A DNA stretch of 63,158 nucleotides, counting the filler, from Olpidium bornovanus S191 (taxonomy: Eukaryota; Fungi; Olpidiomycota): assembly GCA_017911155.1 (NCBI GenBank). It is 30 parts of 30 records of this genome, joined end to end, with 100 filler letters (N's around TTAATTAATTAA, not from the genome) between each part and the next. Parts side by side here need not be neighbours in the genome. Positions count along the whole stretch, not along the records: positions 41,091 to 43,368 come from JAEFCI010004814.1; 29 more parts are not named here. One strand, 5' to 3'. Within the stretch, counting starts at the first letter, position 1. Each line of letters starts with the position of its first letter. This document shows, one piece after another, positions 43,137 through 43,468 of this stretch. The position numbers and the translations under genes were made by a program. The notes under the pieces were generated by a model, which saw only the letters and a program-made list of their open reading frames with translations, did no database searches and was not told the origin of the DNA.

Positions 43137-43179
43137 TGTTGGAATGGCTTCGCAGGGCGAGCCAGACACCTGGTGAATA

Positions 43180-43252
43180 GGGCAGATAGCTCAGTTGGTA
43201 GAGCGTCCCTCCGGGATAGGGAAGGTCCCAAGTTCGACCCTCGGTCAACCCA
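43180..43252 (+). ncRNA. tRNA-like sequence (73 nt, anticodon position GGG) inside the LTR, with intact Pol III A and B boxes
   Basis: D-stem GCTC/GAGC and anticodon stem TCCCT/AGGGA are perfect. A box TAGCTCAGTTGG 43187-43198; B box GTTCGACCC 43232-43240. Acceptor stem has 2 mismatches, T-stem has 1, C replaces U33, and TTTT follows at 43254-43257. Confidence 0.85.
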
Positions 43253-43268
43253 CTTTTGATGCGCAACA

Positions 43269-43280
43269 GGTTATGAGCCC
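43269..43280 (+). promoter_or_regulatory. Primer-binding site complementary to the anticodon stem-loop of initiator tRNA-Met (half-tRNA priming)
   Basis: GGTTATGAGCCC is the reverse complement of GGGCTCATAACC in fungal tRNAiMet. It directly follows the LTR's terminal CA, the PBS type used by yeast Ty5 and Drosophila copia. Confidence 0.88.
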
Positions 43281-43468
43281 AATTGTGACTTCGTCCCTCC
43301 GATTGTGGTTGCGCGGGTGGCCGAGCCCCGTTGACAGCAGTGCCTGAGGTGCCTGGCTCGAGGGGGGGNNNNNNNNNNNNNNNNNNNNNNNNNNNNNNNN
43401 NNNNNNNNNNNNTTAATTAATTAANNNNNNNNNNNNNNNNNNNNNNNNNNNNNNNNNNNNNNNNNNNN

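Follow-up and report, generated by a model that had tools for sequence, protein, structure and literature searches.

A contig of Olpidium bornovanus S191 that breaks off inside a compact repeat raises the question of what kind of element places a tRNA-like gene within a long terminal repeat (LTR), and of how such an element would be transcribed and mobilized. The window, i.e., the whole stretch of DNA that was analyzed, is 63,158 nt long and joins 30 parts of this genome; the piece of concern here occupies positions 41091–43368. An earlier note on this DNA had proposed a miniature, non-autonomous LTR element that carries a tRNA-derived Pol III promoter and is moved by a copia partner. In our analysis, the unit at the end of the piece is very probably a TRIM of the Helenus type. 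The reading that we favor as a whole, in which a Helenus-type TRIM is mobilized in trans by a Ty1/copia element and has its RNA made by Pol III from tRNA-like A and B boxes, is given a probability of roughly 0.6. For one part of it, that the template RNA would be made by Pol III from the tRNA-like part, the sequence evidence puts the odds at about even.

The element lies on the plus strand. Its 5′ LTR (43137–43268, 132 bp) starts with TGTTGGAATGG, finishes with ...GCGCAACA and has TGTTG...CAACA ends. To follow the unit beyond this one copy, contigs of four public runs (X1, X2, X6, and X9) were placed on the window piece, and the limits of the LTR are backed by contigs whose sequence departs from that of the piece at 43137 and at 43268. 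Within the LTR, a U3-like part of 43 nt (43137–43179), in which no TATA-like motif was seen by eye, stands 5′ of the tRNA-like gene (43180–43253). A TTTT run resembling a Pol III terminator (43254–43257) comes directly after the gene, and the LTR closes with the U5-like 3′ terminus GATGCGCAACA (43258–43268). The PBS GGTTATGAGCCC (43269–43280, 12 nt) follows with no gap to the LTR and is complementary to the anticodon stem-loop of initiator tRNA-Met. A half-tRNAiMet PBS is the type found in Ty5 and Drosophila copia. The same 12-mer forms the end of oligo oPA1732 in a Met-tRNAiMet paper. Beyond it lie a non-coding spacer of 79 nt (43281–43359), which holds no useful reading frame, and the polypurine tract GAGGGGGGG (43360–43368), which makes up the final bases of the contig. 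The earlier note had described this same layout, i.e., a 132-bp segment with inverted termini, a PBS directly behind it, about 80 nt of non-coding DNA and a purine tract, and each part was recovered in its place. The internal region is thus 100 nt long (43269–43368) and is without gag or pol; a protein search with a 50-aa frame inside the element found no homologue. The full length deduced from the window is 364 bp (132 + 100 + 132). The five bases before the element, GGTGG (43132–43136), belong to interrupted gag codons (W-V) and are a predicted 5′ copy of the target-site duplication, the 3′ LTR and 3′ flank of the window copy lying off the contig. A direct repeat between 43188–43213 and 43276–43301 (73% identical) was judged likely to be due to chance.

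A complete copy was reached through protein collections, which were searched with reading frames antisense to the LTR. Two such searches returned one annotated Olpidium bornovanus "hypothetical protein" each, and both protein contigs, L028 and L029, belong to GCA_017911155.1 (JAEFCI01), i.e., to O. bornovanus S191 itself (PMC7865070). On its minus strand, L029 carries a complete copy of 359 bp, made up of a 128-bp LTR, a 100-bp internal region and a 131-bp LTR; with the 364 bp deduced from the window, this agrees with the size of about 360 bp that had been put forward before. The PBS and the purine tract are both present, the tract reading AAAGGGGGG directly before TGTTGG, and in this one copy a perfect 5-bp duplication, CTGAC, stands on both sides. 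The window LTR is 91–93% identical to both L029 LTRs in the alignment, and the spacer (43281–43359) is 90% identical to that of the L029 copy. Compared with each other, the two L029 LTRs are 91% identical, with 10 of the 11 mismatches being transitions; given this pattern of divergence, the L029 copy is either old or has been under a transition-biased process. Relatives of the window sequence in S191 contigs are 90–97% identical, the copies seen are diverged by 7–10%, nearly all of it in transitions, and activity of the family may have ceased. In L028 there is an LTR fragment in reversed orientation, whose flank at the TGTTGG end is different again. As a separate observation, positions 3444–3514 of L029 resemble an 'empty site' paralogue, which aligns up to the insertion point and weakly beyond it; this is suggestive and was not counted.

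We further analyzed the tRNA-like part of the LTR. The Rfam tRNA model (RF00005) matched 43180–43252 over its full length with 48.5 bits (E 9e-9; gathering score 29), and ARAGORN called 43180–43253 as Pro-GGG. The A box, TAGCTCAGTTGG, lies at 43187–43198 and the B box, GTTCGACCC, at 43232–43240, with TAGCT...TGG and GTTCGA..C both present. At E ≤ 1, tRNA was the sole Rfam family matched anywhere in the piece 41091–43368, with no 5S. Both L029 LTRs also score as tRNA above the threshold (36.4 and 32.7 bits), and ARAGORN agrees. The minimum-free-energy fold of the tRNA-like part was not better than that of shuffled sequences (z –0.6), so that it is the covariance model and recurrence that support the call, and folding energy does not. 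With this proviso, the 73-nt tRNA-like sequence that had been noticed inside the LTR stands. Chance is excluded, because the unit recurs in many contigs of the four runs and in a complete two-LTR copy. Among aligned LTR copies, the A box is unchanged in all four and the core B-box bases are present; the U3-like part is almost unchanged across the four, and the anticodon arm varies. Three stem pairs are broken in the window copy, two in the acceptor stem and one in the T stem. With the G that the majority of the other copies show at 43230, 43247, and 43248, the T-stem pair and one of the broken acceptor-stem pairs are whole again, and the window copy is therefore taken as a decayed member of the family. 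In the tRNA-like part, a C occupies the position before the anticodon where U is usual. A script found that TTTT at 43254–43257 is the only run of at least three T's in the 232-bp unit, and the run is kept in each of the aligned LTRs that extends this far, three in number (that of the window and the two of L029). We infer that the tRNA-like part does not function as a tRNA.

The architecture of the element is that of Helenus: two LTRs, tRNA-derived A and B boxes, a PBS, a purine tract, a 5-bp duplication, and no gag or pol are all present. Helenus elements are TRIMs with tRNA-derived sequence in their LTRs and are grouped as TRIMp3 (Kojima, 2024; PMC10886601). In fungi they have tRNA-like LTRs, mostly a PBS for the anticodon loop found in tRNA-iMet, the tRNA to which the PBS type of our element is assigned, and 5-bp duplications, which plant Helenus have as well (PMC10886601). 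The fungal elements LTR-1_PGr, LTR-1_PTrit, and Helenus-2_PGr have two short LTRs with tRNA-derived A and B boxes, as here (PMC10886601). The likeness extends to the 5-bp duplication, the non-coding content and a tRNA-like part that is implausible as a working tRNA and, in the portion of the published sequences covered, to an LTR that starts with TGTTG, an identical PBS and a G-rich purine tract that ends the internal region. In the supplementary FASTA of Helenus sequences, 48 occurrences of the 12-mer GGTTATGAGCCC were counted (PMC10886601). In the portion covered, two internal regions start with it and a third has it 18 nt in; those internal regions that reach their ends finish in G-rich tracts, and the LTR in this portion begins with TGTTG. 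The published length range is 311–1263 bp (PMC10886601), and the present element falls within it, near the small end. Two differences stand out. The tRNA parts of published fungal Helenus were aligned to tRNA-Thr (PMC10886601), whereas ARAGORN reads Pro-GGG here, and the published fungal hosts are Basidiomycota, whereas Olpidium is a zoosporic fungus of the Olpidiomycota.

Fungal Helenus have been published from Pucciniales and a few Agaricomycetes alone, all Basidiomycota, and the paper makes no mention of Olpidium, chytrids or zoosporic fungi (PMC10886601); a literature search found no paper that combines Olpidium with LTR retrotransposons. To compare the element with the published families, six words of 11–15 nt, taken from the LTR start and end, the tRNA-like part and the PBS with three further bases, were looked up in the published FASTA; none of the six was found, in a comparison that words split across lines could escape. 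Since the tested words are absent from the file, we read the element as a new Helenus family, separate from the published ones as far as short words can tell, and it is apparently the first fungal Helenus outside Basidiomycota. Because elements of this kind were described in 2024, the novelty is that of a family and a host lineage, not of a kind of element. This fits the suggestion of the earlier note that the family might be undescribed in a zoosporic fungus, close relatives being found in O. bornovanus S191 contigs, and the comparison with Cassandra and Helenus drawn there was correct (PMC10886601). Like our element, Cassandra is a TRIM with a Pol III-type small-RNA gene and a terminator-like T run in each LTR (PMC10886601). 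It differs in that it carries 5S, occurs in plants, measures 565–860 bp and has documented Pol III transcripts (PMC10886601), whereas the element described here is known from DNA and carries a tRNA-like part only. The tRNA-derived SINEs (SINE2) share with it a tRNA-derived head with A and B boxes, a short non-coding sequence and high copy, but they are without LTRs, PBS and purine tract, are copied by LINEs, and have tails and duplications of variable length; in the present element, by contrast, the tRNA-like part is repeated as part of the LTR, and the duplication in the one complete copy is 5 bp.

A TRIM has to borrow its proteins, and the evidence points to Ty1/copia as the lender. Scanning soil metagenomes with a 20-mer across the LTR end and the PBS gave 25 loci. 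These copia-type loci have in common with the element just the junction, i.e., the last 8 LTR bases and the PBS; none of them contains a tRNA, and there were no further Helenus copies among them. The two that were examined in full, L005 and L007, are intact copia elements with RVT_2 and rve, in which ...GCGCAACA stands directly before GGTTATGAGCCC and GAGTGGGGG directly before TGTTGC. Together with Ty5 and Drosophila copia, they resemble the Helenus-type element in the PBS for the anticodon stem-loop of initiator tRNA-Met, the TGTTG...CAACA ends and the G-rich tract before the LTR, and the 5-bp duplication of copia type is seen in the L029 copy. They differ from it in being autonomous, with 4.5–5 kb, gag and pol, and LTRs of ~250 bp without tRNA-like sequence. 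Nearer to hand, a Ty1/copia element in the same window piece (E2, described below) has a 13-base tract-to-LTR junction, GGGGGGGTGTTGG, that is identical to that of the Helenus-type element. E2 is without its 5′ end, and the 3′ end of its LTR is unlike that of the element beyond CAACA. Among the copia elements recovered, there was no autonomous Olpidium copia with the PBS GGTTATGAGCCC. Published fungal Helenus have copia partners (PMC10886601). On the strength of the junction and PBS common to the soil loci, and of GGGGGGGTGTTGG common to E2, we infer that a Ty1/copia partner probably acts in trans.

How would such an element make its template RNA? Cassandra offers a model in which transcription would both begin and terminate within the small-RNA part of its LTRs (PMC10886601), and this model is followed here. 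Pol III would start near 43180 in the 5′ LTR, from the A and B boxes, would read through the weak TTTT (43254–43257) of that LTR, and would terminate either at the TTTT of the 3′ LTR or in the flank, at a run of T. Because a transcript from the presumed start would meet the TTTT before the PBS, the run would have to be read through in the 5′ LTR for a usable template to form; if it were used in the 3′ LTR, the tRNA-like segment (~75 nt) would become the terminal repeat (R) for strand transfer. A cleaved initiator tRNA would then prime minus-strand synthesis at 43269–43280, the G-rich tract would prime plus-strand synthesis, and a copia integrase recognizing TGTTG...CAACA would insert the DNA with a 5-bp stagger. 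The partner copia would use the same half-tRNA-iMet primer, the same tract-to-LTR junction and the same TGTTG...CAACA ends. The unchanged A box, the 43-nt U3-like part and the one T run after the tRNA-like part would support the Pol III model, and the placing of this TTTT also complicates a simple form of it.

The same structure and the same mobilization could also go with a tRNA-like part that is not a promoter, with Pol II transcribing the template from the LTR, or with read-through from neighboring genes supplying it. The tRNA-like part would then be the relic of a tRNA or SINE insertion into the LTR of an ancestral TRIM, or would have some other role, and the most that Pol III would yield is a dead-end product of ~75 nt, terminated at TTTT. 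The position of this run, directly 3′ of the tRNA-like part and 5′ of the PBS, is what such an account would expect, and the window copy sits in the gag of another element in the same orientation, which makes read-through possible. The published account leaves the Pol III function of Helenus unproven (PMC10886601). In addition, joints from 43166 to 43251 and from 43172 to 43254 were also seen among the run contigs and hint at LTR variants with the tRNA part missing or replaced, but the intervening sequence is not given, and these joints may be merely divergent tRNA parts. A Pol II promoter, however, would have to be accommodated in a U3-like part of just 43 nt in which no TATA-like motif was seen. 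Moreover, the A box and the core B-box bases are kept in four LTRs in which the anticodon arm drifts, and in Cassandra it is the small-RNA part of the LTR in which transcripts start (PMC10886601). We regard a template made without the tRNA-like part as conceivable but rather doubtful.

Returning to the Helenus-type TRIM that we favor, its architecture calls for a second LTR beyond the end of the contig at 43368, and the earlier note had predicted one. In all four runs (X1, X9, X6, and X2), contigs carry a joint from 43366 to 43135 with 2 ambiguous bases, equivalent to 43368 to 43137, at which GAGGGGGGG is followed by TGTTGGAATGG. The predicted order, a purine tract and then the start of an LTR, is thus seen in the four runs and in L029. 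Record 16 of X6 runs through the internal region, the purine tract and the LTR; its match ends at 43268 and is followed by 72 unlike letters. In X9 and X2 the unit appears as 262-nt cyclic contigs, as expected from a 232-nt cycle of LTR plus internal region at k = 31. A 232-nt cycle is compatible both with an LTR–internal–LTR element and with a tandem array, and joints that go back by 232 in four runs could therefore be taken to mean that the unit is a satellite repeat holding a tRNA pseudogene; tandem arrays have been reported for the Helenus family LTR-11_DR (PMC10886601). Against this, k-mer assembly of any LTR–internal–LTR element is expected to give a cyclic contig, contigs depart from the unit precisely where the LTR starts and where it ends, the placing of PBS and purine tract is exactly that of a retroelement, and the L029 copy is a single internal region between two LTRs, its flanks being unique and bearing a 5-bp duplication. 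A satellite is thus very improbable.

The same contigs bear on copy number. In X1, the summed contig depth is ~1,600 over the LTR and 7–18 over the adjoining gag, a step of about 100-fold at 43137. Contig depth is not equal to copy number, but a depth over the LTR so far above that of the adjoining gag suggests that the family has many copies. Just upstream of 43137, the DNA of five X6 contigs is mutually unlike. Insertion sites are varied and include the gag of another element in the window. This is read as a high-copy family of Olpidium bornovanus or of a very close relative.

The window piece itself is a nest of three elements, in which the Helenus-type element lies in a second element (E1) and E1 lies in E2. 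On the plus strand, E1 comprises a 5′ LTR of 437 bp (42310–42746), the PBS-like sequence TGGCGCTCCCGGGCAGG of the tRNA-3′-end type, which follows this LTR (42747–42763), and the 5′ part of a gag-like gene (42809–43136) that is cut off by the Helenus insertion. The ends of the E1 LTR are fixed by L028, where this 437-bp unit comes after a purine tract and has its last base at the same position, and L026 is a 90% identical E1 paralogue that spans 42307–43128. For the E1 gag frame an exact look-up gave no recorded match, and an exhaustive phmmer search with it gave 19 relatives (best E 5e-52), all of whose matches stop at residue 105–110, which corresponds to nt 43137. Longer gag relatives (705–818 aa) run on with W-I-D-G-P..., one of them having an aspartyl-protease domain, and the W-I/V encoded at 43132–43136 is conserved in gag homologues. 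Because the homologue matches end at 43137 while longer relatives continue, the miniature element was inserted into the gag of E1, which bears out the insertion into a gag frame read earlier from the sequence. A tblastx match of 42796–42915 (minus strand) to copia gag was weak and was judged an artefact of linked statistics and composition, since the plus-strand gag frame has strong homologues. E1 in turn interrupts, at 42310, the C-terminal end of the Ty1/copia pol of E2 (42061–42309, minus strand), for which identity with the final 80 residues of the intact L005 copia polyprotein is 41% (E 4e-16). The purine tract and LTR of E2 follow on the minus strand (41864–41999), with GGGGGGG from 41999 down to 41993 and TGTTGG, where the LTR begins, at 41992; at its other end this LTR may reach 41864, 41879 or 41898. 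In L028 the nesting is the reverse of that in the window, i.e., an E1 LTR lies inside a Helenus LTR, and with the opposite order in the window both families were evidently moving over the same period.

This nest also disposes of a reading that we had favored at first, in which the LTR measures 910 bp (42359–43268), has the ends TGTTGCGCATCGAAA and TTTTGATGCGCAACA, and includes the 132-bp unit as its 3′ part. It was suggested by an inverted repeat that pairs 42359–42373 with 43254–43268 at 14 of 15 bases, one arm ending at the LTR/PBS junction; we estimate the chance of such a repeat with one arm fixed at ~1e-4. However, 42359 lies 50 nt inside the E1 LTR, whose ends at 42310 and 42746 are fixed by L028, with L026 in agreement; the homologues of the gag at 42809–43136 extend past 43137; depth steps about 100-fold at this base; and the L029 LTRs measure 128–131 bp, with flanks that begin right at TGTTGG. 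The 910-bp LTR was therefore rejected as scarcely credible. A genuine cellular tRNA gene with a retroelement inserted beside it, as with Ty1 and Ty3 in yeast, would account for the covariance score above threshold and the properly placed TTTT, but is highly unlikely for a sequence that lies inside a high-copy repeat, in both LTRs of one element and within its target duplication, with stem mismatches, a C where U usually precedes the anticodon, and copy-to-copy differences in the anticodon arm.

Olpidium is the zoosporic lineage closest to terrestrial fungi. The Helenus-type TRIM described here has practical consequences for the genome of this organism: two "hypothetical protein" models, BJ554DRAFT_404 and BJ554DRAFT_4230, are spurious products of it, short-read contigs break at it, as at the end of the window piece (43368), and with its high copy the predictions of tRNA-Pro-GGG genes for this genome would be inflated. 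As to range, it carries a recently described class, the TRIMs with a Pol III-type promoter, beyond rusts and mushrooms and into Olpidium, which bears on whether their origin was ancient or repeated. We tentatively suggest, as a joint reading that may well prove wrong, that Helenus-type elements are not restricted to Basidiomycota and either are older than the published ~130 million years or have arisen repeatedly, wherever a half-tRNA-iMet copia and tRNA-derived sequences meet, and that the tRNA-like segment is the R of a Pol III template. With its sole T run right after the tRNA-like part, this 360-bp element is a compact test case for the Pol III template model. If the reading is true, Olpidium would offer a minimal system of 360 bp for retroviral-type genomic RNA made by Pol III, in which the TTTT would be deliberately weak.

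The LTR of the Helenus element, a non-coding TRIM of about 360 bp, takes part in two inverted repeats. The first spans 15 nt with 14 of 15 bases matching and pairs window positions 42359-42373, lying 50 nt inside the LTR of E1 (the element whose gag is cut by the Helenus insertion), with 43254-43268, the last 15 nt of the Helenus LTR. If one arm is taken as fixed, we estimate that such a match would arise by chance with a probability of about 1e-4, and the two arms may represent a shared integrase-end motif. The second, of 14 nt with 13 of 14 bases matching, joins the U3-like part of the Helenus LTR (43158-43171) to the internal region just 5' of the purine tract (43347-43360). 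In an RNA or cDNA that covers the internal region, the purine tract and the 3' LTR, this repeat would form a hairpin around the tract-to-LTR junction. In the decayed Helenus copy on the O. bornovanus contig L029, transitions have eroded the 14-nt repeat, with no sign of compensating changes in it.

Transitions likewise account for nearly all of the differences among the window LTR (43137-43268) and the two LTRs of the L029 copy (9/9, 11/12 and 10/11), and they predominate in the public sequencing run X1 as well. This bias is consistent with deamination of methylated cytosines or with a RIP-like process acting on repeats. In addition, the tRNA-like part is bypassed in three contigs from runs X1 and X6, by joints that lead from 43166 to 43251 or from 43172 to 43254; such joints may reflect LTR variants that lack this part, or variants in which it is too divergent to align.

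E1 is itself a second repeated LTR element, with an LTR of 437 bp, a PBS-like sequence of the tRNA-3'-end type and a gag related to gag-protease proteins of 700-800 aa. It is present at 42310-43136 in the window and on the O. bornovanus contigs L026 (941-1756) and L028 (123-587). Internal deletions of 134-179 nt, seen as joints in contigs of the public runs, distinguish copies of E1, and summed depth in run X1 is very high across the first ~60 nt of its LTR.

Following the E2 copia pol fragment, an LTR on the minus strand (41864-41999) is apparently very short, 95-129 bp depending on which far end is taken, and carries a tandem duplication of 18 nt at 41945-41980 and another of 19 nt at 41861-41898. 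The junction in which GCGCAACA is followed directly by GGTTATGAGCCC is common to many mutually divergent copia elements from soil metagenomes (L001-L025). In one of these loci, L005, the junction occurs twice, at a spacing of 4,738 bp, suggesting tandem elements that share an LTR.

The left 770 bp of the window piece (41091-41860) gave no Pfam or RNA-family matches, and none of the four runs had contigs that cover them. On L028, positions 841-945 form a run of ~100 nt that is almost wholly C, while on L029 an A-rich 25-nt tandem repeat and a ~345-nt repeat (1-270 and 270-1240) adjoin the Helenus copy. The O. bornovanus annotation places a 'hypothetical protein, partial' on each of these contigs, BJ554DRAFT_4230 (L028 325-744) and BJ554DRAFT_404 (L029 1657-2078); the DNA translated in both cases is E1 LTR and Helenus sequence, and both are most likely spurious gene models.
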